From Cyanophora paradoxa CCMP329 (taxonomy: Eukaryota; Plantae; Glaucophyta), in NCBI GenBank assembly GCA_004431415.1, contig QPMI01000338.1, forward strand, positions 1 to 54,258: 54,258 bases of DNA, given 5' to 3'. The notes beneath the pieces were generated by a model that saw only the letters and a program-made list of their open reading frames with translations, did no database searches and was not told where the DNA came from. Shown piece after piece: positions 5,421 through 52,330 of the stretch. Positions within the stretch are counted from its first letter, which is position 1. Each line of letters begins with the position of its first letter. Made by a program: the position numbers and the translations under genes.

Positions 5421-5890
5421 GTGGGAGGCAAGGCGCGCGGAGTGGTCATGCTCGAGGGCCCCCACATTTGCGTGCGGCCGCAAGCAAGGAGGGCAGCGAT
5501 AGCTCCAAGAGCAATGAGAAGGGGACTGGCCATGGGTAGAAGGGGGATGAGGGGAAGGTGCAGGACGGGATGCGCAGCAGCAGGTTGAATGTGCCACAAG
5601 AGGGCGGCGATGATGGTGAGGAGCTTGGGGGAGTAGTGTGGGTACGGGGCTTTCTTTAAGGGGCCACGGGGGGATATAGTGTCTAGAGCAGTTTGTAGGG
5701 CGTGGCCTGCTAAAGCAGAAACGGTCACTATCGAAATAAATTCTAGGGTTCTGGAGGATGGCCTAGAAGAAGGAGGAAAGGCAGGGTAAACGGTGCAGCC
5801 AGCACAGCCGGGGCCAGGCCCGGTCATCTGAGACATAGAGTGCATGCAGGAGATCAGCCCCGAGCTGCCATAGTGCACAGGAAAGCACAT
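1..5890 (-). CDS. Pro-rich protein with a 42-aa tandem repeat (LDLRDAVGPPAAPRCARADGPGPEVKPPPSPRAPPASPQLAP) preceded by hydrophobic segments; C-terminus lies outside the window
   Basis: The unique ORF 5087-5890 reads in frame into the repeat. Unit variants are mostly synonymous in this frame. Frame breaks coincide with small indels in G/C-rich runs and may be sequencing errors. Confidence 0.6.
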
Positions 5891-9539: not shown

Positions 9540-10792
9540 AGCCCATCCTTCAATCTGCAGCTGGCGCCGTGCTCGAGCTTGAGCCCTCGCGCTCCGCGGC
9601 GCACGTGGTGTTGCGGATGCAGCCGGCCTCGACGACGTCGTGTTGTGGGCCGGTGAAGGCGACGCCCACCGCGCAGCCCCTCACCACGCTCTCAATCATC
9701 TGAAAATGGGTCTGTCAGACTCTGGCGGCGCGCGTGTCGCAAGCGCGGGCCTGCCTGGACAACGCATGTACGGTGCTTGAAGCTCACGGCGTGATTGCAT
9801 GCGGATATTTCGCTCCTTCTGACTTCCACGGTCGCGCACGGCATATCGCAGACGATGCCGTGCTGCGGCCATGCGCGAGCTTCCGGTCAGCGGCGGGCGG
9901 AGCGGGCGGCGGACGGAGCGAGCGCCGGCGGACGCGCCTGCGGCCTGCAGTCGGTGATGCGGCAAGCGGTGAACGAGAGGGTGGACTGGACGGGCGCCGC
10001 GGCCTCCGCGTGCGTGTTCTCTGACGAGGTGACGCGCACTCCGACGGAGCCCCGCCCATTAATCACGCAATTGTCAAAGCGCCTGCAGCGTGTACGCGTA
10101 CATCAGCTTTGAAGTACGAGTTTTAAAGATTAGAGCGATAAGAGCGCGGAGAGGTGCCATCACCAGTTACAGCCGCTGCCCTTGAAAACCATGCTGCCGC
10201 GCAGCTCCAAGTTCACGAACGTCACCCTCGCCTGCCGCAGAGCGCGCATGATCAGAATCGAATTTGGGTCAGATCTAGAATTTCAAAAGCGCCTTCAAGC
10301 TCGAAGAGCATCTAAAGATGCGCACAGAATTTCCAGTGGCGAGGATGAGAACGCGCGAAGGGGAGTCGGGCTGCAAAATGGTCTGTTTCTCCGAATCGCC
10401 GACGATCGTGAGGGTGCATGCAGTCGACGTCAGATGCCATGATGCCTACGCGCGCCCCGCCGGCCGCACCGCAAATTTCAGGCCGCGTGCGCATGAATTC
10501 AACAGCGTATACGGGCCCGGCTAAATCGCACCTGCAGCGTCGTGCGGCCGCCGGGCTTGGAAAGATGTGCAATCCCTACGAGAGGCGGATCTCGATATTC
10601 TCGCAGCGGTCGCGTTTCGCGCGCTTCCAGGCCTGCGGGGACTTTAAGATTGGCTTTGTGCGCGCGCCGCGGCGCGCGCCTCGAGGCTCGAGCTCGCGAA
10701 GAATCGAAAACGGGTCGCGGCGCCCCGCGCACACGCACGCGCACCGCGGCGATGGTATGAAATCTCGAATTTGCGCCGACGAAGAACGTCAT
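9540..10792 (-). pseudogene. 5' half of beta-helix/BTB gene, copy 1 (BTB part missing)
   Basis: Exons include MTFFVGANSRFHTIAA, ARVTFVNLELRGSMVFKGSGCNW, RFDNCVINGRGSVGVRVTS...STLSFTACRITDC and HGIVCDMPCATVEVRRSEISACNHAVSF. Near-identical to 20200-21020. Homology stops at about 9540. Confidence 0.7.
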
Positions 10793-10927
10793 CGCGGATC
10801 GTGCGGTGCACCGACGGTCCCTGCATGAGGAGCTCGCCGGAATGATTCGATCGAATTTCGCGCGAATTTCGTCTGGGATTTTTGAGGGCCTAGGGATCAA
10901 GAGGCTCGCGGATCAAATCCCGGGCAA

Positions 10928-11041
10928 GTCCTCGTAGCTCAAAGGTTAGAGCGCATGGATCCGGGTCGTTTAATTCCTGCTTCCGAGCGGGCTTGAACTG
11001 GGTCGGTCCAGAAGGTCCAGGTTCGACTCCTGGCGAGGACA
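10928..11041 (+). ncRNA. tRNA-like Pol III RNA, type A, copy 1 (extended hairpin in place of the anticodon arm)
   Basis: Acceptor stem GTCCTCG/CGAGGAC plus A; D-arm GCTC-AAAGGTTA-GAGC; T-arm CCAGG-TTCGACT-CCTGG; A and B boxes; TTTT downstream; 58-nt central segment. Confidence 0.75.
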
Positions 11042-12449
11042 GTTTTCGCGGCTTCCACTCCCGGCCGGGCCGAATTCGCGCTTTCGCAATTTCACGAAAT
11101 TTTCTCAACTTCACGAGGTTTCGCCCCCGCCGCGGCGCCTCCGGCGGCGCACATGTGTCTGGCTGCACATGCGCATGCATATATATAGGCCACAGATTTA
11201 GATCGGACTCCGCGGCCGGGACTTCGAAGTGTAGTGAATATATTAATGAGAGCGCAACTCGAAATTCTCGAAATTCGCAGACTTCTGGCCCCAGCTAATG
11301 CCATGATGCACGCCTCTACAGCTATTGCCGAGTTGTGCCGGCCACCGCCATAACCGGCGCAAAGCTTTGCTAGGCCCTAAGCCAAGTACTACGGTAAGGC
11401 CTCCTAGCCGCGTAGTAGCTAGGCCTCCAGATTTGATCTCCGCCCCCGAGTGCCGAAGCGCGCTCGGCGGGCCGCCCAGCCTGGCAGGCCTTGCAACTGC
11501 GTGCGCGCTCCCCAGCCCCGCCCTCGGTGCACGTGCCTCGCCGAAACGCTCGTGTTGGCAAGACTTGGGCCGATGATTTTTCGCGGGGTCCGAGTTCGAG
11601 CGGCTCACCGTGGCCAAATCTTCGATTTCGCGAATTCGCCAAGCCAAGAAGATACGTATACCTGCATGCCTATCCGACAAGTGCCCCATCTGGACCCCAT
11701 CTGGGTGACTCAGTGAGGGAGCTAGCACAAGAGTTAAATCCTTCGGAACTTAATCTTAAGCTCAAGCATTTCCCTCGGGAAGGGGAGAAGGGAGCGGGGT
11801 GCCTTAAAATGTCTAAAAGGCTATAGCGCTATTAGGAAAAATATTGCTATATATAAGTTGCCTCGTCCGATTCCTCCGATGCGCTCTCTGATCATGACGA
11901 TCTCCTCTCAAATTGCTCCCCCTGCGCCCTGGCATTGCTGCGGATCTCCTGGTTGTCACTGAGTACTTAGATTTGTTATGTTTTGATTGCAGTTTCAAAG
12001 TTTCACTCTAGATATGTGCGAATTGCACTCTCTTGGTCCCAGGCTATCGCGCTTAAAAGGGGGCTCTAACGGTCTGGGGCTCTAAAAGGGGGGGGGGGGG
12101 GGGCCGGGGGGGGGTGGTACTGTGATTCGAGCCGGCCGCGGGTTTGGCCAGTTTGTGAGCATTCAAAAAATGGAGGGAGAGCAGATCCATTCGGCAAGCT
12201 TAAGGGGCTGAGGCTGGGGCTCGAGGAGCGTTTGTAGCGAGGAGGTTTTTGATAAGGTCGAGCCGCTAATTCTGCCGAATTCTGCCGAATTGATGGATAC
12301 TCTCGCACCGCATCCGCGCGATAGCGAACATCAAATATGTTTTTAAAGGCGCCCTATCACAACTTAAAAAATGCGTCACTTCGGCGCCATTCGCTTTCCC
12401 CAAGAATTCAATGATTGCATTGCATTCGCATCATGACCGTACACATGTA

Positions 12450-15400
12450 TCACATCTCAGCGCCTACGCCGATGCCGCTTCTGCGCATGCACGAGCTGAG
12501 GCGGCATCGGTAGCACGACTGCCGAGCCGCGAGGGCACGGGTGAGTTCGACAGCAAGTTGAGGGTGGGAGCTGAAAAGGGCTGGGAACTGCTCGCTGCTG
12601 ACTGCTGCCTTGAAATTGGACATCTCGACGGCGCAGCGTAGCGCCAGCGCCCGCAGGCGCCCGTCGCCCAGCTGGTCTGCCAAGACGAGCGCCTCGATTG
12701 CCACACCGGCCTGGCGGAGCGTGAGAGCCGTGCGAGACTGGGCGGGGCGGCGATGGTCGGAGGGCGCACTGGGAGAGAGCCGTAGTGGTCGAGGCTCTTG
12801 AGGATGCATTCGAGGAATGAGGAAGCCCCGAAGTAATGGGCCGCTCGTATGACCTCTAGGCAAGCCCGGGCCTCGGCCCTGTCTGCATTGCAGGATCTTG
12901 CGTCGCCCCGCGCTTCAAAGCCTCGCGGCGCGAAGTCAGTTGACGGCATTCAAATTTATTCCACGGAATTCGAATACATATATTTACATCAAGGAAGAAA
13001 ATTAAATTCGTTTGCTCGGATAGGTACGGCCAGTAATTATATAAGGAATGGGGCTGCCCAGGGCCCTCCCCACGCTCCGCTGTTTCCAGCGACTCGCGAT
13101 CGGCCGAACCGTATGCCCCCCCCTTCCCCCCCCCCCCCCAAATATATTTATATTAGAGAAGCTCGCGCACGCAAATTGTCACGCCACGTCTTCGAGTAGG
13201 GTACCCGCAGCCCGCCCGTGTAGCAGAACCAGAGAAATGAACGGAACGTGTCGGCGCTGAACCCGTGCACCTGCCGCCGAGGCCGCGGGAGTCAGGGTAC
13301 AGGGCCAGGCGGTGCAGGGGCTCACACACATCGATGACACGGCTCTGGGACTCCAGCATGCCGGAGGAGAGCGATGCGCGAAAATAGTCGCCTTGTGCCT
13401 GTGCGGTATTCGGGAGGTTACGATCTAATCCTGGAAAGGGGGCTCAGGGAGGGGGCCGAGGCAAGAGATCTAGAGAGGGCGCGGGACAAGGTCGCGCGCA
13501 CAAAAAGGACGGATGAATCGACCCGGAAATCCACAGGCTCCAGGGGGTCAGGGCATCCGAATGTAGAGCCAGGCGACTCTGGGGCGGAGTTTGCAATCGA
13601 GAATGTGCAGAATTTATATAAATATTAGCTATGAAATGATATTACACGGGGTCCTCAGCGGACCGGGTGGCGGGTGGACACGCAAGGTCACGTCGGCGGG
13701 AGGGCACTCGGACGGGTTGCGATCGGGGACGGCACAGCTGCCGGAGGGGAACCCCTCGAAAAGGGCGGCCTGCGCGAAGCACAGTGAGGCCGCTGCAAGG
13801 CGGTACGCGGGATGCACGTGGAGGGTACAAGTTGGGACTCGGGGAGGGCATCGCTCGCGTCGCTCGTCGGATGCTGGGCCGCTTGCAATTGCAGCGGGTG
13901 CCGGGGCCCCTGCGCGGACGTCGCATGGCCGGGCACTCGTAGCTACGAGCTTTGTGCTTATAATTAAGGCGCACCACGGGCTCGCTCAACGGCGGCACCG
14001 GTGCTTGCCACGGCCTCGGAATTCCGTCCTGTGGGGGATCCGGGAGGAATAGGGGGATATCAAAGGTCGCAACGCCTCTAAGTCAAGAAGGGCGGGGGAC
14101 AAATTAAAACATGTACGTACGTCGTTGTTGGTGTATTCAATATTCTCAAGGGAATACATTCGCCAGGCTTTCTTGCAGGAAGCAAAGCTGCAGGGAAGGC
14201 CGAGTCAGCCTTCTACCAGTTGAATTTCCAATACATGTTTAACCTTGACGCCCAGCCCAACGCTATCGCTAGCGCTAGCTATTTAATTTCTATAGCCCAT
14301 CCTTCAATCTGCATGCGCAGCTAGCAGCTGGCGCCGTGCTCGAGCTTGAGCCCAACTCTAACTTAGTAACTTCGAGGGCTGCAGCCCCGGCCACGCCGGT
14401 GGAGCCCCTCACGCTCCACGGCGCACGTGGTGTTGTGGATGCAGCCGTCCTTGACGATGTCGCGTTCTGGGCCGGTGAAAGCGATGCCCACCGCGCAGCC
14501 CCGCACCACGCTCTCAATCATCTGAAAAGGGGTCTGTCAGACGCCGGCGGCGCGCGTCGCGAGCGTGGGCCCGCCTGGACAACGCATGTACGGTGCTTGA
14601 AGCTCACGGCGTGATTGCATGCGGATATTTCGCTCCTTCTGACTTCCACGGTCGCGCACGGCATATCGCAGACGATGCCGTGCTGCGGCCATGCGCGAGC
14701 TTCCGGTCAGCGGCGGGCGGAGCGGGCGGCGGACGGAGCGAGCGCCGGTGGGCGCGCCTGCGGCCTGCAGTCGGTGATGCGGCAAGCGGTGAACGAGAGG
14801 GTGGACTGGACGGGCGCCGCGGCCTCCGCGTGCGTGTTCTCTGACGAGGTGACGCGCACTCCGACGGAGCCCCGCCCATTAATCACGCAATTGTCAAAGC
14901 GCCTGCAGCGTGTACGCGTACATCAGCTTTGAAGTACGAGTTTTAAAGATTAGAGCGATAAGAGCGCGGAGAGGTGCCATCACCAGTTACAGCCGCTGCC
15001 CTTGAAAACCATGCTGCCGCGCAGCTCCAAGTTCACGAACGTCACCCTCGCCTGCCGCAGAGCGCGCGTATGATCAGAATCGAATTTGGGTCAGATCTAG
15101 AATTTGAGAAGCGCCTTCAAGCTCGAAGAGCATCTAAAGATGCGCACAGAATTTCCAGTGGCGAGGATGAGAACGCGCGAAGGGGAGTCGGGCTGCAAAA
15201 TGGTCGGGTTCTCCGAATCACCTACGATCGTGAGGGTGCATCCAGACGTCTGCGCAGCCGCGCGGCGCCGCGGGGCCGAGAAGGTGATGATCAGGGCGCC
15301 CGTGCATGTATATATATGACTCATCTGCGTCCGGATAGAAAGTAGCCGCACCTGCAGAATCGTGCGGCTGGGAAAGACGTGCAAGCCCGACGAGAGGCGG

Positions 15401-15601
15401 ATCTCGATTGTTTTGCAGCGGTCTTGCTTTGCGCGGTTCCAGGCCTGCGGGCGCCTTCAGCTTGGCTTTGCGCGCCTTGAGCTCGCGAAGGATCGAAAAC
15501 GGGTCGCGGCGCCCCGGGGAGCCCCACTCACACGCACGCGCGCGCACCGCATCGATCGTCTTAAATTCCGAATTCGCGCCGACGGCGTATACGTAGTTCA
15601 T
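12450..15601 (-). CDS. Parallel beta-helix (pectin lyase-like) + BTB/POZ (+BACK-like) protein, copy 2, multi-exon
   Basis: Starts MNYVYAVGANSEFKTIDA. BTB motifs: SECPPADVTLRV, DYFRASLSSGMLESQSRVIDV, FSADTFRSFLWFCYTGGL. C-terminal VAIEALVLADQLGDGRLRALALRC...SHPQLAVEL. Intactness not fully verified. Confidence 0.72.
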
Positions 15602-15757
15602 CGCGGATCGTACAGTCGCTGAGAAGCTCGTCGCGGTCGGGACGACCGAGGACGCCCGCGCGGCTCGCCGAATCCGGAATGAGCTGATCGAATTTCGCGC
15701 GAATTTCGTCGGGGCGGCTGATTTGGTTAAGAAGGCCGCGGATCAAATTCTGGGCAA

Positions 15758-15870
15758 GTCCTCGTAGCTCAAAGGTTAGAGCGCATGAACCGGCTGCTCA
15801 TTCCCCCCACTCGAGTGGTGGTTGAACCAGTTCGGCGCAGACGATCCAGGTTCGACTCCTGGCGAGGACA
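15758..15870 (+). ncRNA. tRNA-like Pol III RNA, type B, copy 2
   Basis: Acceptor, D and T arms identical to copy 1. Different central hairpin (CCGGCTG...CCAC-TCGA-GTGG...CAGTTCGG). TTTTT terminator. Confidence 0.75.
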
Positions 15871-18256
15871 GTTTTTGCGGCTTCCACTCCCGGCGGGGCC
15901 CGGCGCCCATTTCACTCGCTTGCAAAATTGCGATGAAACTTCTCTAAATCTGACCGCCTTTCCGCGCCTACCAACTTCGAAAATTCGCGTGTCCGAAATC
16001 GTCAGGCCGCCGCGCCAGAAAACGATTTCCGCAAGCGTTATTTGTTGATCGAAAGTAGAGGAATTTCGGAGTCGATTTCGCAAGAATTTTGCAGGGTTTT
16101 GCAGCGCCACCCCGGGGCCCGTAGCGTGGCACGGCGCCCTGCGGCCTCTGGCCCCCAGGCCGCCAACCGCAACGGACCAGAATTCGGAGTGATGAGGGAG
16201 CATCTTTGTGCGCGTCAGCGAGCAGCTCCCTCAATGAAGTGGGCGCTAGGCCAGGGGGCAGGCTGCAGATTTCAAACTGATCATGAACTTGGTGACGGCC
16301 GATCGCGAGACTTTCGCGGGGAAACCCTAGGCCTGGCCCTTTCCCTCAGCACTAGAACTAGACTATAGCTAGTATGCCCAGGCCTGGCCAGGATGTATGA
16401 CCGATACAGCGGCTCTCAATAGTAGGGGAATTTCGGAGCGGATTTCCGAAGTTCGCAAGTGTTTCGCAGGGTTTCGCAAGGTTTCGCCCGGCGGCCACCG
16501 TGCCGCTTGCAGCGCGACGCGGCGCGCTGTACCTGTACCCAGGCCCAGGCCCAGGCCCTGTACCCCTGTAGCAGCCGTCGTGCCTCCGGCAGGTGCACTG
16601 CGGCACGCCCCACGACCTTACAAACTGAGTCAGTTGCACCTGCACACGATCACAGATCGAGACGACCGTTGAATGTTATTAATGAGGTACTAATTATGAG
16701 GAATTCAGACCGTCATTACTACGGATCTTCTAGATGTCATCGAGTACTTAGATTGTGATACTAGTGGCCCGGCCGCGATTTTCGCGCCGGGGGTGCAATG
16801 GGGGAACCGGGATCTAATGAAAGAGGCCTAGTCACTGAGTTGCACGCACATGCGCAGAGTCCTCCCCTCGGGGTTGCGCTGCTCGGCTGCGGGCAGCGGC
16901 GCACGCGGTACTGCGGTATAAGCTCGCCGAGAGAGAGTCGATTTCGGCGGCGTGCTGAGCGCAGCAAGAGAGCACGGTCTGGATGGCCGGGCGTGCTCGA
17001 GCTCGGCTGCGATCAGCGGCGCAGCTAGGCAGCGGCGCAAGCGGTTTTGCGGTGCAAGCTCAAGCACGAGTGCCGGTCAGCGTGCTCGGCTGCGGGCCGG
17101 GCAGCGGCGCGCGCTCGGTAGGCGGTGCTGCGGTGCAAGCTTGATGCAGTGAGAAGTAGTCCAGCTGCAGGCGGCACGGGTACCGTACGGCGTACGCGGC
17201 GCAGTGTGAGGAAGCGGAAATCTAGAGGAGACAGCTAGGGAGAAGTGGTTCCATGCAGAACCGCGCAAGGAAGAGCCCGGAGTGAGAGAGAAGTTGGTTT
17301 TCCCCTCGAAAACCACTTTCGAAAGTCGAGGGCTGACCGGTTCACCGAGCCAATCAGAACGCGAATAACCATCATTTTTTTCTGGTGTTGCATACTGGAC
17401 CTCGCAAACGGCCTCATAGAAAAAGTTTGGCTGAAGCGAGGGAACGGGAAGCAACTTGGCAAGCTGGGAGAAGCCCTTCGGTCTTCGTCCCCCCTTGCAA
17501 TTAACTATGATACTATGATATGTGAGAATATTAATTGCATTCTCTTGGTCCCGGCTATAGAGCCTCGGAGTCCGGCTGTTGAACTCCGTCAGGCTCTCAT
17601 AGTCTGTCAGTCTCTCACCGAAATGTAGTATGCTATATGAAATGTACCCCCTTGATTTATTGCGCAATCGAGAACTCGCCGCACAAGTCCAGAGCTGGGC
17701 AGAAATCGTAGAAATCGTAGCTTGTCACATGTACAGTGAGCAATTGGCGCAGAAGCAAGCAATTGCAAGGCTGAAATCACTTTCAAGTGCATTCCAGACC
17801 AGACCAGAACAAGGATAATTGCACTTCCGCGCAAAGGCCTCGCTGTGCAAAAGTCAACTCTCTCTTCAGCCCTCGACAGCTGCAGTGCAAGCTTTAAGGC
17901 AGCTCAAACCCCTCCCACGTCCCAGGCCCTCCCCCCTCCCGTACCCCCGAATTGCAACTGCCCTTTGCGGAACTTGAACGCTGGAGCGATAAGCTTAAAA
18001 CACCGGCCGGGCGCACTGCTAACGTTGACTCGGCTGACCGTCGGACTCGCCGCGAAGCTGGCCGAGTCCTCTTCGAATTCGTATGGCCGTAGCTGTAGGA
18101 ACCTCTCGCACCGTATCCGCGCGATAGCGAACATCAGATATGTTTTTAAAGGCGCACTATCACAAACTAAATGCGTCACTTCGCGATCCTCGCCATTCGC
18201 TCCCCCCAAGAATTGCATTGCATTTGCATCGAGAGACCTGAGGGTATACACGTGTA

Positions 18257-21200
18257 TCACATCTCAGCGCCTACGCCGGAGCTTAGGCCACGGCATTTGT
18301 AGCACGACGGCCGAGCCGCGAGGGCACGGGTGAGCTCGGCAGCGAGCTGAGGATGGGAGCTGACAAGGGCCGGGAACTGCTCGCTGCTGACTGCTGCCTT
18401 GAAATTGGACATCTCGACGGCGCAGCGTAGCGCCAGCGCCCGCAGGCGCCCGTCGCCCAGCTGGTCTGCCAAGACGAGCGCCTCGATTGCCACACCGGCC
18501 TGGCGGAGCGTGAGAGCCGTGCGAGACTGGGCGGGGCGGCGATGGTCGGAGGGCGCACTGGGAGAGAGCCGTAGTGGTCGAGGCTCTTGAGGATGCATTC
18601 GAGGAATGAGGAAGCCCCGAAGTAATGGGCCGCTCGTATGACCTCTAGGCAAGCCCGGGCCTCGGCCCTGTCTGCATTGCAGGATCTTGCGTCGCCCCGC
18701 GCTTCAAAGCCTCGCGGCGCGAAGTCAGTTGACGGCATTCAAATCTATTCCACGGAATTCGAATACATATATTTACATCAAGGAAGAAAATTAAATTCGT
18801 TTGCTCGGATAGGTACGGCCAGTAATTATATAAGGAATGGGGCTGCCCAGGGCCCTCCCCACGCTCCGCTGTTTCCAGCGACTCGCGATCGGCCGAACCG
18901 TATGCCCCCCCCCTCCTTCCCCCCCCCCCCCCCCCCCCCCCCAAATATATTTATATTAGAGAAGCTCGCGCACGCAAATTGTCACGCCACGTCTTCGAGT
19001 AGGGTACCCGCAGCCCGCCCGTGTAGCAGAACCAGAGAAATGAACGGAACGTGTCGGCGCTGAACCCGTGCACCTGCCGCCGAGGCCGCGGGAGTCAGGG
19101 TACAGGGCCAGGCGGTGCAGGGGCTCACACACATCGATGACACGGCTCTGGGACTCCAGCATGCCGGAGGAGAGCGATGCGCGAAAATAGTCGCCTTGTG
19201 CCTGTGCGGTATTCGGGAGGTTACGATCTAATCCTGGAAAGGGGCTCAGGGAGGGGGCCGAGGCAAGAGATCTAGAGAGGGCGCGGGACAAGGTCGCGCG
19301 CACAAAAAGGACGGATGAATCGACCCGGAAATCCACAGGCTCCAGGGGGTCAGGGCATCCGAATGTAGAGCCAGGCGACTCTGGGCGGAGTTTGCAATCG
19401 AGAATGTGCAGAATTTATATAAATATTAGCTATGAAATGATATTACACGGGGTCCTCAGCGGACCGGGTGGCGGGTGGACACGCAAGGTCACGTCGGCGG
19501 GAGGGCACTCGGACGGGTTGCGATCGGGGACGGCACAGCTGCCGGAGGGGAACCCCTCGAAAAGGGCGGCCTGCGCGAAGCACAGTGAGGCCGCTGCAAG
19601 GCGGTACGCGGGATGCACGTGGAGGGTACAAGTTGGGACTCGGGGAGTGCATCGCTCGCGCCGCTCGTCGGATGCTGGGCCGCTTGCAATTGCAGCGGGT
19701 GCCGGGGCCCCTGCGCGGACGTCGCATGGCCGGGCACTCGTAGCTACGAGCTTTGTGCTTATAATAAGGCGCACCACGGGCTCGCTCAACGGCGGCACCG
19801 GTGCTTGCCACGGCCTCGGAATTCCGTCCTGTGGGGGATCCGGGAGGAATAGGGGGGTATCAGAGGTCGCAACGCCTCTAATTATAAGTCGAGAAGGGCG
19901 GGTTGAGACCATGGTCACGTTGTCAGTGTAGACAAAACCGGGGCCGGCCTCCGACAATTGTAGCACTTGTTTGCAGGACGCAAAGCTGTACGAAAGGCCG
20001 AGTCAGCCTTTTACGGCCGACGCCCAGCTCAAGGCTAGTGTTAGCTTTAGCACATCGTTCTATTTGGCGCCGAGCTCGAGCTTGCGATTGAGCCCAGCTC
20101 TATATCTATGAGGCCTTCTACTGATTGAAGTTTCAGTAAATGTTTAATCTTGACGCCCAGCCCAACGCTATATATAGCTGGCTACCCCGGTATTTCTATA
20201 GCCCATCCTTCAATCTGCAGCTGGCGCCGTGCTCGAGCTTGAGCCCTCGCGCTCCGCGGCGCACGTGGTGTTGCGGATGCAGCCGGCCTCGACGACGTCG
20301 TGTTGTGGGCCGGTGAAGGCGACGCCCACCGCGCAGCCCCTCACCACGCTCTCAATCATCTGAAAATGGGTCTGTCAGACTCTGGCGGCGCGCGTGTCGC
20401 AAGCGCGGGCCTGCCTGGACAACGCATGTACGGTGCTTGAAGCTCACGGCGTGATTGCATGCGGATATTTCGCTCCTTCTGACTTCCACGGTCGCGCACG
20501 GCATATCGCAGACGATGCCGTGCTGCGGCCATGCGCGAGCTTCCGGTCAGCGGCGGGCGGAGCGGGCGGCGGACGGAGCGAGCGCCGGCGGACGCGCCTG
20601 CGGCCTGCAGTCGGTGATGCGGCAAGCGGTGAACGAGAGGGTGGACTGGACGGGCGCCGCGGCCTCCGCGTGCGTGTTCTCTGACGAGGTGACGCGCACT
20701 CCGACGGAGCCCCGCCCATTAATCACGCAATTGTCAAAGCGCCTGCAGCGTGTACGCGTACATCAGCTTTGAAGTACGAGTTTTAAAGATTAGAGCGATA
20801 AGAGCGCGGAGAGGTGCCATCACCAGTTACAGCCGCTGCCCTTGAAAACCATGCTGCCGCGCAGCTCCAAGTTCACGAACGTCACCCTCGCCTGCCGCAG
20901 AGCGCGCATGATCAGAATCGAATTTGGGTCAGATCTAGAATTTCAAAAGCGCCTTCAAGCTCGAAGAGCATCTAAAGATGCGCACAGAATTTCCAGTGGC
21001 GAGGATGAGAACGCGCGAAGGGGACTCGGACAGCAAAATGGCCGGGCTCTCCGAATCACCTACGATCGTGAGGGGGGTGCATCCAGACGTCTGCGCGCGC
21101 CGCATGCGCAGCGCCAAAAGGCCGCGGCGTTCAGGGCGCCCACGCATGCCTCAGCTGCGTCCGGATTTGATCGAACCTTCAGGTACGTGCGGCTGGGAAA

Positions 21201-21426
21201 GACGTGCAAGCCCGACGAGAGGCGGATCTCGATTGTTTTGCAGCGGTCTTGCTTTGCGCGGTTCCAGGCCTGCGGGCGCCTTCAGCTTGGCTTTGCGCGC
21301 CTTGAGCTCGCGAAGGATCGAAAACGGGTCGCGGCGCCCCGGGGAGCCCCACTCACACGCACGCGCGCGCACCGCATCGATCGTCTTAAATTCCGAATTC
21401 GCGCCGACGACGTATACGTAGTTCAT
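18257..21426 (-). CDS. Parallel beta-helix + BTB/POZ protein, copy 3, multi-exon
   Basis: Starts MNYVYVVGANSEFKTIDA. The BTB region is near-identical to copy 2 (18290-19880 vs 12500-14080). The middle exons are near-identical to copy 1. Confidence 0.72.
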
Positions 21427-21576
21427 CGCGGATCTTACATGCAGTCGCTGAGAAGATCGTCGCGATCGGGCCGACGCCCGCGCTCGCCGAATTCTGAATG
21501 AGCTGATCGAATTTCGCGCGAATTTCGTCGGGGCGGCTGACTGGGGTATGAAGGCCGCGGATCAAATTCTGGGCAA

Positions 21577-21689
21577 GTCCTCGTAGCTCAAAGGTTAGAG
21601 CGCATGAACCGGCTGCTCATTCCCCCCACTCGAGTGGTGGTTGAACCAGTTCGGCGCAGACGATCCAGGTTCGACTCCTGGCGAGGACA
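21577..21689 (+). ncRNA. tRNA-like Pol III RNA, type B, copy 3
   Basis: Identical to 15758-15870. Confidence 0.75.
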
Positions 21690-22859
21690 GTTTTTGCGGC
21701 TTCCACTCCCGGCGGGGCCCGGCGCCCATTTCACTCGCTTGCAAAATTGCGATGAAACTTCTCTAATCTGACCGCCTTCGAAATGTCGCGCATCCGATCG
21801 CGGAATGTTCAGACCGCCGAGCCAAGAACTCGGAAGATTTCAGAAAGCGTGATTTGCCAAGTTGTTGATCAAAAGTAGAGGAATTTCGGAACGGATTTCC
21901 GAAGTTCGCCAAGGGTTTTGCAGGGTTTCGCAGCGCCACCGTGTCACGATCGCAACGGACCAAAGTTCGGAGTCATTGAGTGATGAGGGAGCATCGTTGT
22001 GCGCATCAACGAGCAGCTCCCTCAATGAAGTGTGCGCTAGGCTAGGAAGGGGGCGGGCCGCAGATTTCAAACTGATCATGAACTTGGTGACGGCCGATCG
22101 CGAGACTCTGAGACTTTCGAGGGGAAATCCTGGCCCTTTCCCTCAACACTAGAACTAGCCTATAGCTAGTATGCCCAGGCCTGGCCAGGATATATGCGGC
22201 GGGCGGGGCCACTTCAGTGCTCGGCGTACGGTTGGATCTGCTTGGCGCGGTGCCAGGCCTCAGGGCCTGGCATGGGCGCCCTGCGACGCGCGGCCCGCGC
22301 GCGGCCGGCCGTTGGCCCCGTGCATCGCCGGGGCGCCCGCCCGGATGGCCCGCGGCCGGAGGCCCTCAGGGCCTCTAATTATGAATTCTGAACGGCTAGC
22401 CTAGTAGGGACAGGGGGAGTAGGGGGGAGTAGCCCTTCCCGCGTGAGCGTGGGGAAAACTATTGCTATAGCTATATATAATTAATGCAAATCTAAAAAAT
22501 CGACTCCTCGTCCGAGGCGCTCTACTCGGCCAAATGACGAACCTCGAGCTCCGGATCCTGCAGCTGGTCATGACGATCTCCTCTCAAACTCTCTCTAGAT
22601 CTCTCCCCCCCTGCGCCCTGGATCCCGCGCCCAAGGCCTAGCTATAGACGGCGCCATTCTCAGTACCTGGTCCGACGGTCCCGGGGCCCCCTCCTGCCCT
22701 CCCCCAGTCTGACAGTCTCAGTACCTGACACTGCCCCGGACTCAGTGACTCGGGACCCCGGCCCGACACCCCTATCATACCGCATCGCTGTTCACTGTTC
22801 ACTGAGTCAGTGCTGCGGCAGTACTACCACAAGGCAAGGTTTGCGAGGGCGAAATTGAC

Positions 22860-22950
22860 TAGAGGGTGGACTGGACGGGCACAGCGGCCTCCGCGCACTG
22901 CGGGACTCCAACGAGGCCCTGCCCATTCATCACACAACTGTCAAAGCTTG
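22860..22950 (-). pseudogene. Isolated remnant of one beta-helix exon (trace of a further copy)
   Basis: AGAGGGTGGACTGGACGGGC...GCCCATTCATCACACAACTGTCAAAGC aligns, with a deletion, to 9977-10080. Confidence 0.6.
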
Positions 22951-23036
22951 GAGTATTGGATTATTTCTGGAGTTTCGGTATTTCCAATTGGTATTTGGTA
23001 TTTGGTATTTGAGCATATATCACTACGTATACCACA

Positions 23037-26000
23037 TCAACTGTGGCATTTGGAGCACGATCGGGAGGCAAGCTCCGCGAAGGCGCCGAGGAGCTCGAAG
23101 GCGAGCTCGGGGTGGGAGCCGAGGAGGTCCCGGGACTGCCTGCTGTGGGCTGCCGCCTTGCTGTTGCGTCCCTCGATGGCGCGGCAAAGCGCCAGCGCCC
23201 GCAGGGTCCGGTCGCCCAGCTGGTCTGCCAAGACGAGCGCCTCGATCGCCACGCCGGCCTGGGGGAGCGTGAGAGCCGTGCGAGACTGGGCGGGGCGGCG
23301 ATGGCTGGAGGGCGCGCTGGGAGAGAGCCGTTCCGGTCAAGGCTCTTGAGAATGCGCCCGAGCAATGGAGAAACGCCAAAATAACTGGCCGCCCGTAAAG
23401 CCTCGAGGCGGGCCCGGGCCTCGGCGGCCCTGTCCCAAGATCCTGTGATGCCCCGCGGCGCAAGTCAGTAACCGGTATCTTGGTCAGTCAGTTCGGAATC
23501 AAGCTAAAGCTCGCGCGCAGGGCCGGACCCGCGTCCCTGGAGCGGGAGCAGACTCTAATTATACAAGATACGAAGGCGCACCTACATTGTCACGCCACGT
23601 CTCCGAGTAAGGTACCCGCAGCTCGTCTGTGTAGCAGAACCAGAGGACAGAACGAAACGTGTCGACGCTGAATCCGTGCACCTGTTGGGAGTCAGGGTAC
23701 AGGAACGGGCGGGGCAGGGGTTCACGCGCATCGATGACGCGGCTGTGGGACTCGCGCATCCCCGAGGCGAACACTGCGCGAAAATATTCGCTTTCGGCCT
23801 GCGGGGGATCCGGATTCGGAAGGTCACGATCTGATCCGGGAAAAGGAAGATCTAGAGGATATTCAGAGAGAGGGCGGGGGGCAGGTGCGCACAGAAAGGA
23901 CGGAGGAATCGACCAGGAAATCCACGGGCTCCGGGGGCTCAGGGCATCCAAATGCGGAGGCGGGCGACGCTGGAAGGGAGTATAAAATTGAGGCGGAAGG
24001 CCCGCCGGCAGCGTAGCGGATGTAAAATTCAAAGAAACGCAGATATAAGGTTATATAATAAGCTTAAAAGGGGCCTTCGCGTTCGTTGCTCAGCGGACCG
24101 GTCGGGGGGTGGACACGCAAGATCACGTCGGCGGGAGGGCACTCAGCTGCGGATGGGTCGCAAAATGACTCGCGATCGGGGACGCCACAGCTTCTGAATG
24201 GGACTCCCTCAACGAGGGCGATCTGCGGGGGGCTAAGTGAGACTGAGTGTGCGGGGTTAGGGGGCCCGGGATGTGATGCTACAAATTTGAGGTCAGGGAG
24301 GGTTTGCAGCGGGTACTGGGGCCCCTGCGTGGCGCGGCGAAGCGCCAGCGCCCGCAGGGTCCGGTCGCCCAGCTGGTCTGCCAAGACGAGCGCCTCGATC
24401 GCCACACCGGCCTGGCGGAGCGTGAGAGCCGTGCGAGACTGGGCGGGGCGGCGATGGCCGGAGGGCGCACTGGGAGAGAGCCGTAGTGTTCGAGGCTTTC
24501 GAGAATGCGCCCGAGCAATGAAGAAACGCCAAAGGAATACGCCGCCCGTATAGCTTCGAGGTAGGCCCGGGCCCCGGCCGCCCTAGGCCTGTCCCCAGAT
24601 CCTGTGAAGCCCCGCGGCGCGACGTCAGTTACCGGTATTTTGTTGGTTATATCATTATATTTTAATTAGTCACTTAATTATGAGGTAAAAAGCTAAAGCT
24701 CGCGCACAGGACCCGCGTCACTGGCGCGGGAGCAGACTCTAAGTTCCGGAGGCGCACCTACATTGTCACGCCACGTCTCCGAGTAAGGTACCCGCAGTCC
24801 GTAGGTGTAGCAGAACCAGAGGACAGAACGAAACGTGTCGACGCTGAATCCGTGCACCTGTTGGGAGTCAGGGTACAGGAACGGGCGGGGCAGGGGTTCA
24901 CGCGCATCGATGACGCGGCTGTGGGACTCGCGCATCCCCGAGGCGAACACTGCGCGAAAATATTCGCTTTCGGCCTGCGGGGGATCCGGATTCGGAAGGT
25001 CACGATCTGATCCGGGAAAAGGAAGATCTAGAGGATATTCAGAGAGAGGGCGGGGGGCAGGTGCGCACAGAAAGGACGGAGGAATCGACCAGGAAATCCA
25101 CGGGCTCCGGGGGCTCAGGGCATCCAAATGCGGAGGCGGGCGACGCTGGAAGGGAGTATAAAATTGAGGCGGAAGGCCCGCCGGCAGCGTAGCGGATGTA
25201 AAATTCAAAGAAACGCAGATATAAGGTTATATAATAAGCTTAAAAGGGGCCTTCGCGTTCGTTGCTCAGCGGACCGGTCGGGGGGTGGACACGCAAGATC
25301 ACGTCGGCGGGAGGGCACTCGGATGGGTCGCAATTGAAGACGCCACAACTGCCCGAGGGGCTCCCCTCAATGAGGGCGACCTGTGCATGCGGATATACAG
25401 TGAGACTGCTGCAAGGATCACGTAGTATGCGGGGTGAGGGGGCCCCGGGGTGGGAAGATACAAGTTCGAGCTCGGGGTCGGAGAGGGCTGGGCTCTGGCC
25501 GCCCGTTGGATGCTCCTGGGGCGCTGGTAGCGGATGCTGGGGGCCCTGCGCGGGTGTTCACGCGGCGTAAGAGGTATAGCTTCGAGTTGAAACCCCAAAA
25601 TTTACCACGGAGACAGTCATGAGCCTCGCCATTCCGGATCCGTCCTGCGGAGATCCGGGAATATAAATATTAGGCTGCGAAGCTTAAGCCGAGCAGGGCA
25701 GAGATCGAGATAGAGGAAAAGGGCAATATAATGCAGACGTCGTTGTCAGTGTAGACAAAACCAGGGCTTCTCTCCGAAATTCGTAGCGCGTTATTGCAGG
25801 ACAAAAAGCTGCAGAGAAGGGGGGGTCAGCGTTCTACGGATTGAAATCGCCCAATTAACGCCCAGCCCAGGGTGGAGTTTGATTGGAATAAATTCTGAGC
25901 AGCAAGCTAACGAATAAATTGTTTAAGCCCAGGCTTGAACTTTAAAGGCTGCTGCTCCGCGGCGCACGTGTTGTTGCGGACGCAGCCGGCCTCGACGACG

Positions 26001-27264
26001 TCCTTTCGCGGGCCGGTGAAGGCGATGCCCACCGCGCAGCCCCGCACCACGCTTGCAGTCATCTGAGGAGGGCCGGGGTCTGTTAGACGCCGGCGGCGCG
26101 CGCGTGTCGTGAGCGCGGGCCTGCCTGGACAACGCATGTACGGTGCTTGAAGCTCACGGCGTGGTTGCAGGCGGATAATTCGCTCCTTCTGACGTCCACG
26201 GTCGTGCCCGGCAAGTTGCAGACGATGCCGTGCTGCGGCCGTGTGCGAGCTTCCGGTCAACGGGGGCGGAGCAGGCGGCGGACGGGGGGAGCGCCGGCCG
26301 CGATGGGCGTACCTGAGGCCTGCAGTTGACGATGCGGCAAGCGTCGAACGAGAGGGTGGACTGGACGGGCGTCACGCCGGCGCCCACCGCGCGCGTGGTC
26401 TTTGACGAGGCAACGAGCACTCCAACGGAGCCCTGCATACGCAGCCCATTAATCGCACAATTCTCATAACACCAGCACAGCGTGCATGCACCTTCAGCTT
26501 GGCTTTGAAGGAGCTCTCCGAAGGAGCGCGTGCGCTTGCAAGCGCTGCATCTATCACACAGTTCGCAAAGCGCCTGCGCCGTGTGAGCGTACATCAGCTT
26601 CGAATATACGCGAAATCCGACTTTAGCAGAGAAAAGCGACTCGGCGATAAGCGCGCGGAGCGGTGCCATTACCAAGCACAGCGGCGGCCCATGAGAACCG
26701 TGCTTCCACGCAGCTCCAAGTTCGCGAATGTCACCGTCGCCTGCGCTCATGATCGGATCGCCGGAGTCGAAGTCGCGCCAAATGTCGAAAAGCGCTTGAA
26801 GGTCTAAAGCCTGAAGAGCATGCAAGAATGCGCACGGAGTCCCCATGGACGAGGAACAGTGCGCGGGAAGGCGACTGGGACTGCAAAATGGTCTGTTTCT
26901 CCGAATCGCCGACGACCGTGAGGGTGCAGTCAGATGCCTACGTATACGCGCGCCCGCGCCGCCGCGCCGCAGATCTCAGGCCGCGTGCGCATGAATTCAG
27001 CTGCGTACGGGCCGGGTTGAATCGCACCTGCAGCTTCGTGCGGCTTGGAAAGACGTGCAGTCCCGATGAGAGGCGGATCTCGATATTGTCGCAGCGGTCG
27101 CGTTTCGCGCGCTTCCAGGCCTGCAGGGACCTTTAGCTTGGCTTTGCGTGCGCGCCGCGGCGCCTACAGCTTGCGAAGGATCGGAAACGGATCGCCACAC
27201 GCACGCGCACCGCAGCGATGGTCTGAAATCTCGAATCGTAGCCGACGACGTACGTATTCTTCAT
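23037..27264 (-). CDS. Parallel beta-helix protein with a tandemly duplicated BTB module, copy 4, multi-exon
   Basis: Exons MKNTYVVGYDSRFQTIAA|AWKRAKRDRCDNIEIRLSSGLHVFPSRTKLQ|ASDCTLTVVGDSEKQTILQ. The motifs SEYFRAVFASGMRESHSRVID and FSVDTFRSVLWFCYT occur twice, 1176 bp apart. Confidence 0.65.
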
Positions 27265-27419
27265 CGCAGCTCACGCAGTCCGCCGTCCGCCGATGGTCGC
27301 TGTGGAGCGCGGGGGGGCGGCTGAACGACCGCAGCGCGCCGGAATGAGCGGATCGAATTCGAATTTCGCGCGAATTTCGCCTGGAAACCTCGGAATTTCG
27401 AGGGCCTATAGCTAGGGGT

Positions 27420-28331
27420 TCAAGAGGCTCGCGGATCGAATTCCGGGCAAGTCCTCGTAGCTCAAAGGTTAGAGCGCATGGATCCGGGTCGTTTAATTCC
27501 TGCTTTGCATGGTGGGGTTGAATTGGGCCGGTCCAGAAGGTCCGGGTTCGACTCCTGGCGAGGACAGTTTTCGCGGCTTCCACTCCCGGCCGGGCCGAAT
27601 TCGCGTTTTCGCAATTTCACGAAATTTTCTCAACTTCACGAGGTTTCGCCCCCGCCGCGGCGCCTCCGGCGGCGCACATGTGTCTGGCTGCACATGCGCA
27701 TGCATATATATAGGCCACAGATTTAGATCGGACTCCGCGGCCGGGACTTCGAAGTGTAGTGACTATATTAATGAGAGCGCAACTCGAAATTCTCGAAATT
27801 CGCAGACTTCTGGCCCCAGCTAATGCCCGGCCATGATGCACGCCTCTACAGCTATTGCCGAGTTGTGCCGGCCACCGCCATGACCGGCGCAAAGCTTTGC
27901 TAGGCCCTAAGCCAAGTACTACGGTAAGGCCTCCTAGCTAGGCCTCTAGATTTGATCTCCGCCCCCGAGTGCCGAAGCGCGCTCGGCGGGCCGCCCAGCC
28001 TGGCAGGCCTTGCAACTGCGTGCGCGCTCCCCAGCCCCGCCCTCGGTGCACGTGCCTCGCCGAAACTCTCGTGTTGGCAAGACTTGGGCCGATGATTTTT
28101 CTCGGGGTCCGAGTTCGAGCGGCTCACCGTGGCCAAATTCGATTTCGCGAATTCGCCAAGCCAAGAAGATACGTATACCTGCATGCCTATCCGAGAAGTG
28201 CCCCATCTGGACCCCATCTGGGTGACTCAGTGAGGGAGCTAGCACAAGAGTTAAATCCTTCGGAACTTAATCTTAAGCTCAAGCATTTCCCTCGGGAAGG
28301 GGAGAAGGGAGCGGGGTGCCTTAAAATGTCT
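27420..28331. repeat. Segmental duplicate of about 10895-11815
   Basis: Near-identical sequence from CAAGAGGCTCGCGGATC to GCCTTAAAATGTCTAA. Confidence 0.9.
27451..27566 (+). ncRNA. tRNA-like Pol III RNA, type A, copy 4
   Basis: Same body as copy 1. A T-stem A>G change keeps a G-U pair. The apex of the central hairpin differs but can still pair. TTTT downstream. Confidence 0.75.
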
Positions 28332-28603
28332 AACAGGGGAGAAGGGGGAGTGCGCTTGACAATTAACGCTAGCGCACCGGGGAACGCCTCTGTGAGAGCT
28401 TGCTATTCCCAGCCTGGCCATGGCAGCTTTGCCGCGTGCGTCGAGAGTCACTGAGTTGAGCACGAGCGATCAAGCATAAGGGCGAACAAGTCTTTTCTTA
28501 TTGAATTGAAATATACAGCATGATTATATTAAGATTAAGTCCATAACATATCTAGCCGCTCGCGGGCCGGCCGGGGCAGCCGGATGGGGGTTTACGTACG
28601 GAG

Positions 28604-28646
<43 letters not shown>

Positions 28647-28653
28647 CGGCCCG

Positions 28654-28965
28654 CCCCAATCGCTGCGCATTGCCGTGATCCTTGCCCCAGACGCGCGCGA
28701 CACGGCCGCACGCGTACGGGAGCGGGTCCTCCCCCAATCGCTGCGCATTGCCGTGATCCTTGCCCCAGACGCGCGCGACACGGCCGCACGCGTACGGGAG
28801 CGGGTCCTCCCCCAATCGCTGCGCATTGCCGTGATCCTTGCCCCAGACGCGCGCGACACGGCCGCACGCGTACGGGAGCGGGTCCTCCCCCAATCGCTGC
28901 GCATTGCCGTGATCCTTGCCCCAGACGCGCGCGACACGGCCGCACGCGTACGGGAGCGGGTCCTC
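28654..28965. repeat. Four perfect tandem copies of a 78-bp unit, preceded by a 42-nt poly-G run (28605-28646)
   Basis: CCCCAATCGCTGCGCATTGCCGTGATCC...ACGCGTACGGGAGCGGGTCCTC; the AAT falls at 28658, 28736, 28814 and 28892. Confidence 0.95.
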
Positions 28966-29199
28966 CGCCGCTCCTTCAAATTCCCCCCTCGCCGATTAGA
29001 TATATATCCGAGGAATCATTTGAATTCTGAAGGAAGTGCACGCATATATAGATCTAAATCCGTAGAGCTCGAGGAATCGATCCGAAATCCGAATTCGCAA
29101 TTTCGAAGAAAGGCGGCAAGCCTTCCAGAGACGCTGCAAGTTCGCAGCGCCGCTGCAAGTGCGCAGCGCCGTTTTTGCACAAGATACGATATCGCGGGC

Positions 29200-52154: not shown

Positions 52155-52330
52155 GGTGCTAGCTAGCTGCTGGGCTTCGAACTGACGTGCCCGACAAGTG
52201 CTGGCGTGGCCGCCGAGCCGGAATATCTGACCGTCGATTCTGGGATCGCCCTGTACCCCCCAGTTAGGTGGACGTCAAGGCCTCCGCCCTTCAGTTTGCA
52301 GGGCTACTCGACCTCGGGACGACTACAGCA
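52155..52330. promoter_or_regulatory. 176-bp bidirectional promoter/UTR region
   Basis: Lies between the divergent ATGs at 52154 and 52331. Contains TGACGT at 52183-52188 (+) and 52272-52277 (-), AATATCT at 52222 and GTAC at 52253. Confidence 0.7.

Follow-up and report, generated by a model that had tools for sequence, protein, structure and literature searches.

A possible family of tRNA-Arg-derived, tRNA-shaped RNA genes with a variable anticodon-arm hairpin in a tandem array of Cyanophora paradoxa

In vault RNA and other type-2 RNA polymerase III (Pol III) non-coding RNAs, the A and B boxes are internal, the termini pair, the middle varies, and a T run serves as terminator. Engineered tRNA scaffolds are a laboratory design in which a cargo hairpin extends the anticodon stem. 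Four loci of the glaucophyte Cyanophora paradoxa, located in the 54,258-nt stretch of DNA that was analysed here (the window), resemble both. They share the internal boxes, pairing ends, variable middle, and T run with the type-2 RNAs, from which they differ in having a full tRNA cloverleaf body and a discriminator; a literature search connected no vault protein with Cyanophora. Their predicted shape, a tRNA body with a long anticodon-arm hairpin, is that of the engineered scaffolds, which are laboratory-made, whereas the loci would be a putative natural counterpart.

Like tRNA-derived SINEs, the loci have a Pol III promoter in a tRNA-like head and occur in several copies. A SINE head was among the alternatives named in the original prediction, and it is contradicted by the terminator, which is positioned 1 nt past the discriminator, directly behind the acceptor stem, and by the lack of a SINE body or tail. 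The copies come from a tandem segmental repeat that includes a protein gene, the homology upstream of them reaches this neighboring gene, and no target-site duplications were seen at the copies. The loci also resemble the 'tRNA-like sequences' of PlantRNA 2.0, which are pseudogenes or highly divergent tRNAs, in being detected by tRNA models while having no usable anticodon arm as encoded. They differ from these entries in that old paralogues share a body much better conserved than the sequence around it, an observation that speaks against simple decay. Known non-canonical tRNA introns are inserted away from position 37/38, their removal restores the cloverleaf, and the insert pairs with the exon, and these features recur here. 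Unlike such introns, the loci are without a stable bulge-helix-bulge, and two of the four copies are not rescuable. Position 42/43 is absent from the insertion positions given in a review, and glaucophytes have been reported to contain canonical introns only, whereas the insert described here is a candidate non-canonical intron.

The four copies are located on the plus strand, exactly at the predicted positions, and contain three different centres, that of copies 2 and 3 being the same. The loci and their parts are:

10928..11041, plus strand: type A, copy 1; 114 nt, probably derived from tRNA-Arg(CCG); Rfam tRNA match of 47.4 bits
10970..11010, plus strand: insert of copy 1; 41 nt between tRNA nt 42 and 43, candidate non-canonical intron
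15758..15870, plus strand: type B, copy 2; 113 nt, common body, decayed anticodon arm (U33 lost); Rfam tRNA match of 43.6 bits
21577..21689, plus strand: type B, copy 3; sequence identical to copy 2 (15758-15870)
27451..27566, plus strand: type A, copy 4; 116 nt, G.U pair in the T stem, apical loop unlike that of copy 1; Rfam match of 44.1 bits
27493..27535, plus strand: insert of copy 4; 43 nt between tRNA nt 42 and 43, candidate non-canonical intron
T runs: T4 at 11043-11046, T5 at 15872-15876, T5 at 21691-21695, T4 at 27568-27571

All four copies have a 7-bp acceptor stem, a 4-bp D stem, and a T arm with a UUCGACU loop, as had been predicted. The features that define membership among tRNAs, a D arm with G18 and G19, a UUCRA T loop, and a discriminator, are present. 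In each copy, the A box is present, the B box is perfect, and the T4 or T5 run follows one base past the discriminator. This terminator is conserved in the four copies, and no T4 run occurs inside the gene. The body is constant except that copy 4 has an A>G change in its T stem, where an A-U pair becomes G.U and the pairing is kept. The Rfam model RF00005 matched all four copies over its full extent (model positions 1-71) with 43.6-47.4 bits, above the gathering threshold of 29 bits, and with an insertion of 47-55 nt; around two of the copies, a search to E = 10 returned no vault, Y, or other family match. With default settings, ARAGORN called no tRNA at the loci as encoded, and their primary fold has no 5-bp stem with a free anticodon loop of 7 nt. 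In its intron mode, the program forced Arg(ccg), Phe(gaa), and Pro(ggg), which are mutually inconsistent, have distorted arms, and were not taken as evidence.

For type A, the proposed replacement of tRNA positions 27-43 is incorrect. By natural numbering, nt 27-42 of type A form a contiguous canonical arm (stem 27-31/39-42, U33, CCG at 34-36, and G37), and the extra sequence is placed 3′ of nt 42. Across the copies, the anticodon stem has an insert of 41-57 nt on its 3′ side, which folds back and pairs with the anticodon stem-loop. At minimum energy, type A folds with CCG buried in a long helix; for copy 1, this fold is a cloverleaf with a long arm (-48.8 kcal/mol, z -3.1). In-silico deletion of 10970-11010 or 27493-27535 yields a canonical 73-nt tRNA-Arg(CCG) with a 5-bp stem, U33, CCG, G37, and a 5-nt variable loop. 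The joined 73-nt product was assessed in silico with ARAGORN and ViennaRNA, and that of copy 1 was accepted by ARAGORN without its intron mode. The earlier statement that no intron removal restores the arm holds for type B and fails for type A, for which a 73-nt product with a normal anticodon, named beforehand as evidence against the predicted class, was obtained in silico only.

The exact 19-nt sequence of the T loop and acceptor 3′ end was found in 68 bacterial genome stretches, and each of the 56 bacterial genes with this end that ARAGORN typed is a tRNA-Arg. The A20 identity base is absent from the tRNA-Arg-like body. An origin from tRNA-Arg(CCG) is well supported because type A follows tRNA numbering and becomes a canonical tRNA once 41 or 43 nt are removed; judged from sequence, the four loci would be paralogues of a single gene with this descent, and they do not appear to be anticodon-less by design. 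What stands of the proposed tRNA-scaffold RNA is a tRNA-bodied, Pol III-type gene with a constrained body and a varying centre; its anticodon-free origin is at odds with the Arg-type body.

The main rival of an unspliced product holds that type A contains a non-canonical intron. Type A would then be a working tRNA-Arg(CCG), from which a 42/43 intron of 41-43 nt is excised to give a 73-nt tRNA reading CGG, and type B would be dead or diverted. The canonical cloverleaf and Arg-type body that emerge from the deletion favor this possibility, as an Arg solution by deletion is available in only 0.5% of shuffled centres. G37 is the base expected in CGG-reading tRNAs, and the unpaired U33 and A28 retained in type A are better explained by continued decoding. 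The insert pairs with the anticodon, like genuine tRNA introns. The putative cut sites follow base 2 of a 3-nt stretch behind GGUC, and the two GGUC sequences can pair; paired GGUC with 3-nt stretches matches the core geometry of a bulge-helix-bulge (PMC4090602). Red algae and nucleomorphs provide a precedent for non-canonical introns, the means of splicing being not known for some of them. However, the core has no flanking helices, and forcing this bare 3-4-3 core of 4 bp at 42/43 costs 17-18 kcal/mol over the minimum and destroys the cloverleaf. An equal core is given by 3.8% of arbitrary junctions in the sequence, and no 3-4-3 bulge-helix-bulge with at least one flanking helix was found at the 42/43 junction. 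The putative splice sites are hidden within the minimum-energy helix, A at 32 and G at 38 are unusual, and the introns that a curated survey lists for Cyanophora paradoxa are all canonical and belong to three isoacceptor families. Type B, which retains the body without the ability to decode, would require a second explanation. We consider splicing of type A rather unlikely.

Other splicing solutions were rejected. A canonical 37/38 intron had no solution in any copy when all single deletions were enumerated. Many chance matches, none of them conserved between the types, resulted from scans for bulge-helix-bulge motifs that combine bulges of 2-4 nt with flanking helices. A symmetric 4-4-4 motif with identical GUCG bulges in type A exceeds the minimum by 8.6 kcal/mol and is missing in type B. 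No usable bulge-helix-bulge splice motif was found in the loci.

In type B, the enumeration of all single deletions yielded no canonical anticodon arm; U33 is lost, and the type is not rescuable as a decoder. The prediction that each centre forms a long stem was borne out for type A (z -2.8 and -3.25, the latter in copy 4), and not for type B (z -0.6), the hairpin of which has no greater stability than shuffled sequences, a result that is hard to reconcile with a hairpin displayed for a function. Covariation in the arm is limited to one double-sided compensatory pair, 6-7 pairs are broken in type B, and the comparison of 2-3 independent lineages has no statistical power. An internal direct repeat in the centre, considered as a trace of duplication or of a target site, was not significant (p 0.14-0.33). 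Apical loops were considered as alternative anticodons (UCC, UUG, and CAU after a common CUGCU) and rejected, as the supporting stems are absent. The 12-13-mers of the centre, taken as guides, had no target in the rest of the window except one chance 13-mer.

The tRNA-like loci are in register in the array, one per ~5.8-kb tandem unit. A beta-helix/BACK-domain gene was duplicated together with the locus in the opposite orientation, and the annotated start codon of this divergent gene is ~0.7 kb from each locus. Evolution of the array is concerted and mosaic: the B copies are identical across kilobases, and the A copies have ~99% identity downstream and far lower identity upstream. At least one more paralogue is present elsewhere in the genome, with an identical 23-nt 5′ body, a different centre, and a type-B-like 3′ part. 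Its joints have single-copy depth, and it is also linked to the homologous upstream region. A metagenome scan with a 19-mer from the D arm returned at least 120 loci; among the matches listed, all are ordinary tRNAs (Met, His, Ile, Val, and others by ARAGORN), and none is a family member from another species. A protein-word search through an antisense open reading frame crossing the gene gave no match, and no contigs encoding the neighboring beta-helix/BACK gene model were on record.

Several short elements around the gene are conserved:

10898..10927, plus strand: conserved leader ending in CAA; 6/30 positions differ between A and B, and sequence farther upstream is barely alignable
15728-15757, 21547-21576, 27421-27450: leader equivalents of copies 2, 3, and 4
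11042..11071, plus strand: trailer; T run and ~30 conserved nt with a GC-rich palindrome, present behind every copy
10853..10871, no strand assigned: invariant, near-palindromic 19-mer with a TTTCGCGC core, located 50-72 nt upstream of each copy
15690-15708, 21509-21527, 27361-27379: further sites of the 19-mer

In copy 1, the CAA is at 10925-10927, just before the gene. Homology between A and B stops past the ~30-nt trailer. The 19-mer has 8 matches over the two strands versus 0.02 expected by chance.

The body of copy 1 differs from that of type B at 2 of 60 positions, 45 and 47, both structurally free and both in the 3′ body (2/30, versus 0/30 for the 5′ body). A44, G46, U48, and every stem are kept between A and B, and ~25 of the constrained positions are outside the A and B boxes. 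Flanks were compared over 30-35 nt on each side, 65 positions in total, beyond which they are unalignable, and 13 of the 65 differ. The centres have 16-18 identities per 25 columns, in line with the predicted greater divergence of the centre. This gradient, from 2/60 in the body to 13/65 in the flanks and about one third in the centre, points to selection on RNA shape. Since the type B body is kept although no deletion restores its anticodon arm, the constraint would be independent of decoding; type B shows that the anticodon arm is dispensable for whatever holds the body constant. The apparent constraint could be inflated by concerted evolution in the array.

The conserved flanks bear on another explanation, in which the RNA product is irrelevant and the disabled tRNA genes are kept as DNA elements, for example as a TFIIIC/Pol III boundary or a part of a bidirectional beta-helix/BACK promoter. 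It would account for the intact A and B boxes, for the constant presence of one copy per unit at ~0.7 kb from the start codon of the divergent gene, for the conservation of the leader, post-terminator trailer, and upstream 19-mer, and for the position of the extra paralogue, again beside the homologous upstream region. The invariant acceptor strands, the 3′ strand of the D stem, the ends of the T stem, the restriction of variation to 45 and 47, and the pairing-preserving change are left unexplained, and we regard a DNA element as improbable.

Little credence is also given to a neutral relic, that is, an insertion-broken tRNA-Arg pseudogene whose halves stay similar through gene conversion, with other array copies or canonical tRNA-Arg genes as donors. 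The mosaic concerted evolution of the array agrees with it, and oddly inserted eukaryotic tRNA genes are commonly judged pseudogenes in the literature. However, conversion would have to hit two ~30-nt halves separately while sparing the centre, positions 45 and 47, and flanks of 80% identity, and conversion from a canonical gene would delete the insert.

We tentatively propose that the product is an unspliced, non-decoding, tRNA-shaped Pol III RNA. Its transcription would start at the conserved CAA, be driven by the internal A and B boxes, and stop at the T4/T5 run; RNA-labelled runs, all of them contigs, gave almost no coverage of the loci. The ends may be trimmed by RNase P and tRNase Z, since the acceptor stem, discriminator, D arm, T arm, and bases of tertiary contacts are all kept. 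The predicted RNA is a tRNA body of L shape set on an arm of ~25 bp, the helix of which hides the CCG triplet. The resemblance of type A to an interrupted tRNA-Arg(CCG) could be due to the hairpin pairing, which would protect most of the old anticodon arm. In the weakest step of this scheme, the RNA would stay unspliced and not decode, the acceptor/elbow half would be active, for instance by presenting a mimic of tRNA to a tRNA-binding factor, and the arm would be a tolerated or variable appendage. A little more guardedly, we speculate that the loci represent a glaucophyte family of non-decoding, tRNA-Arg-derived, L-shaped Pol III RNAs with a strictly selected acceptor/elbow and a former anticodon arm turned into a fast-changing hairpin, a natural 'tRNA scaffold' travelling with the beta-helix/BACK family.

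Whether the RNA is spliced or not, the loci indicate that constraint can be strong on entries filed as 'tRNA-like' or pseudogene. If type A is spliced, it would contain the first non-canonical tRNA intron of a glaucophyte. Such an intron, which would lack a bulge-helix-bulge motif, would bear on the origin and timing of such introns in Archaeplastida and on substrate recognition by the eukaryotic splicing endonuclease. If the product is neither spliced nor a non-decoding RNA, the loci would be an instructive case of a disrupted tRNA gene preserved in a concertedly evolving array. If it is unspliced, the loci would represent a natural tRNA body selected for its shape without decoding, and would open a way to study what tRNA-like RNAs do outside translation in an early-branching alga.

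The original prediction placed four tRNA-like genes between positions 10928 and 27566 of the plus strand, and they are found at exactly these coordinates. Each gene matches the full length of the Rfam tRNA model with 43.6–47.4 bits, above the gathering score of 29, and the alignment contains an insertion of 47 or 55 nt at the anticodon region.

tRNA-like genes matching the Rfam tRNA model
10928–11041, plus strand, copy 1, type A
15758–15870, plus strand, copy 2, type B
21577–21689, plus strand, copy 3, type B
27451–27566, plus strand, copy 4, type A

The predicted acceptor, D and T arms, A and B boxes, and terminator are present in all four copies. The acceptor stem of 7 bp is followed by discriminator A, the 4-bp D stem is accompanied by G18 and G19, and the T arm carries the loop UUCGACU. 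The B box is perfect and the A box near-consensus. CAA directly precedes each gene, and a T-run (T4 in type A, T5 in type B) starts one base past the discriminator. Copies 2 and 3 have the same sequence. Copies 1 and 4 differ in the apical loop, by two transitions on the 3′ side of the anticodon-arm hairpin (the arm) that leave its pairing intact, and by a single A>G in the T stem, likewise without loss of pairing; within type A, the latter is the only change in the body (the acceptor, D and T-arm halves), as had been claimed.

The region at ~9.5–28.3 kb (9540–28331) is a tandem mosaic repeat with units of ~5.8 kb, each of which carries one tRNA-like gene. Units 2 and 3 hardly differ between ~18.5 kb and the tRNA-like gene, and the type A copies share ~99% identity over 500 nt downstream, but only 50–90% upstream. 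The mosaic structure of the units suggests that gene conversion or unequal crossing-over is still at work. Each unit contains a divergent minus-strand gene with weak, below-cutoff signals of a right-handed beta-helix and a BPM/SPOP-type BACK domain; the sole database protein found for it comes from EukProt and bears a 'tig...' identifier. The annotated fragment and the tRNA-like gene are arranged head to head, with ~0.7 kb between the start codon of the former and the latter. An invariant near-palindromic 19-mer, GAATTTCGCGCGAATTTCG, is positioned 50–72 nt upstream of every tRNA-like gene, and could be part of the candidate promoter of the beta-helix/BACK gene. Its core, TTTCGCGC, resembles an E2F-type site.

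Positions of the 19-mer, one per copy
10853–10871, copy 1
15690–15708, copy 2
21509–21527, copy 3
27361–27379, copy 4

Conservation between types A and B extends beyond the Pol III terminator, to a block of ~30 nt past the T-run (11042–11071 and equivalents) that contains a GC-rich palindrome, after which the homology ends abruptly. Elsewhere in the window, whose C. paradoxa DNA has a G+C content of 64%, 126-nt (42-codon) repeats with ~80% G+C form a long array within a long ORF (1–5890), and 78-nt repeats form a short tandem array just beyond the last unit (28562–29029). The region 50215–54258 contains exons of a coproporphyrinogen oxidase-like gene on the minus strand, head to head with those of an aerobic Mg-protoporphyrin monomethyl ester cyclase-like gene on the plus strand.

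The loci are real, but the key negative claim, that they form an anticodon-less scaffold from which no intron removal yields a canonical anticodon arm, is wrong for type A. ARAGORN in default mode found no tRNA at the loci, and its three intron-mode calls were forced and mutually inconsistent. We enumerated all single deletions leaving a 17-nt anticodon arm and a 4–6-nt variable loop. In type A, one of these deletions leaves an arm with five pairs, U33, and a position-37 purine, and none at 37/38, the canonical intron site, works in any copy. Type B is not rescued by any single deletion, and there the claim stands. By plain counting from the D stem, positions 27–42, thought to have been replaced, are retained in type A: nucleotides 27–31 are CAUGG, the anticodon loop is A-U-CCG-G-G, and nucleotides 39–42 are UCGU. 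The extra sequence (the insert) is situated between positions 42 and 43, and is followed by a G pairing with C27, a 5-nt variable loop, and the T arm.

Inserts between positions 42 and 43 in type A
10970–11010, plus strand, copy 1, 41 nt
27493–27535, plus strand, copy 4, 43 nt

Type A with the insert removed in silico is a 73-nt cloverleaf that ARAGORN, without intron mode, identifies as tRNA-Arg(CCG). Among 20,000 shuffles of the centre (the variable middle of the gene), 2.8% permit any such deletion solution and 0.49% give an arginine anticodon. The exact 19-nt T-loop/acceptor 3′ end is present in 68 bacterial genome stretches (L121–L188), many of them from Planctomycetota and a few from Gammaproteobacteria, Paceibacteria and others. 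All 56 genes typed by ARAGORN are tRNA-Arg (GCG, CCG or CCT), and several also match most of the rest of the body. The identity of the 3′ ends may stem from deep conservation of a body of Arg type, or from a bacterial or organellar source of the gene. G37 after G36 is expected for a reader of CGG codons. Because the type A deletion solution, the independent match of the body to tRNA-Arg, and G37 agree, descent of the four-copy family from a tRNA-Arg(CCG) gene is well supported. In type B, which contains an insert homologous to that of type A, U33 and several stem bases have been lost.

The insert of type A pairs with the anticodon stem-loop, and therefore the minimum-energy fold is a normal tRNA body on an arm of ~23–25 bp. 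Folded alone, the type A centres have z-scores of -2.8 and -3.25, whereas the type B centre (z -0.6) folds no better than shuffles, so the long stem predicted for every centre is retained for type A only. Both putative cut sites of type A follow the second base of a 3-nt stretch 3′ of GGUC, and the two GGUC motifs can pair with each other, fitting the core of the bulge-helix-bulge (BHB) geometry (PMC4090602). No flanking helices for this core were found at the 42/43 junction, forcing it costs 17–18 kcal/mol and breaks the cloverleaf, and 3.8% of arbitrary junctions in the sequence yield such a core. A symmetric 4-4-4 look-alike was rejected, as it lies 8.6 kcal/mol above the minimum and is missing from type B. 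In a curated survey, tRNA introns of C. paradoxa are only canonical and belong to three isoacceptor families; red algae and nucleomorphs also have non-canonical ones, some of them spliced by an unknown mechanism, and in Chondrus crispus the junction has been assayed by RT-PCR and circular RT-PCR. Given the weak core, the survey and these precedents, splicing of the insert is possible but unsupported. We regard it as rather unlikely that type A represents a tRNA-Arg(CCG) gene interrupted by a non-canonical, non-BHB intron, with type B as its diverted paralogue.

Contigs from two DNA runs and two RNA-labelled runs were compared with window positions 9950–15949. Matches at 10531–10550, 10930–10952, and from 15839 onward identify a fifth paralogue elsewhere in the genome, with an identical 23-nt 5′ body, another centre starting UCCUCGAAUUGAAAAAAAGCGG, a type-B-like 3′ part, and an upstream region related to that of the window copies. 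Its contig has single-copy depth in both DNA runs, and the genome thus contains at least five copies and a fourth centre. SINE-like dispersal was rejected, as the fifth copy is again tied to the neighbouring gene family. In one RNA-labelled run, a low-depth contig stretches from ~650 nt upstream into the fifth centre, and may represent DNA carry-over or a long transcript. RNA-contig cover of the four window loci is essentially nil, which is uninformative for a short structured Pol III RNA. No relatives in other species were among the matches listed in sequence and protein-word searches.

The arm pairing has no statistical support from the three distinct sequences in the window, which contain one double-sided compensatory pair and eight one-sided changes, with 6–7 pairs broken in type B. 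The three centres share an unchanged UUGAA on the 3′ side of the arm (10994–10998, 15822–15826, 27519–27523), although the sequence that it pairs with is not the same in types A and B; the centre of the fifth copy contains UUGAA as well.

The paralogy of types A and B is old: they can scarcely be aligned past ~35 nt downstream or in some stretches of the upstream spacer.

Differences between copy 1 and type B
Leader, 30 nt: 6/30
Gene nucleotides 1–30: 0/30
Centre: about one third of columns
Last 30 nt of gene: 2/30 (positions 45 and 47)
Trailer, 35 nt: 7/35

The centre is more diverged than the flanks, as had been noted, in a comparison of two to three independent lineages. A44, G46 and U48 are kept in the 3′ body. 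In tRNAs, positions 44, 46 and 48 take part in tertiary contacts, and 45 and 47 are free. The loci could be a relic whose halves are kept alike by gene conversion, but conversion would have to act separately on two ~30-nt halves and skip the centre and flanks, which disfavors its simple form and makes this explanation improbable. We give similarly little credence to a DNA-level element serving the neighbouring gene, since ~25 constrained body positions fall outside the A and B boxes, which argues for selection on a folded RNA and not on a protein-binding DNA site. We tentatively consider the loci to encode an unspliced, non-decoding, tRNA-shaped Pol III RNA. Type B, which is unable to decode, keeps the same body as type A, and this argues for RNA-level constraint on the body independent of decoding.
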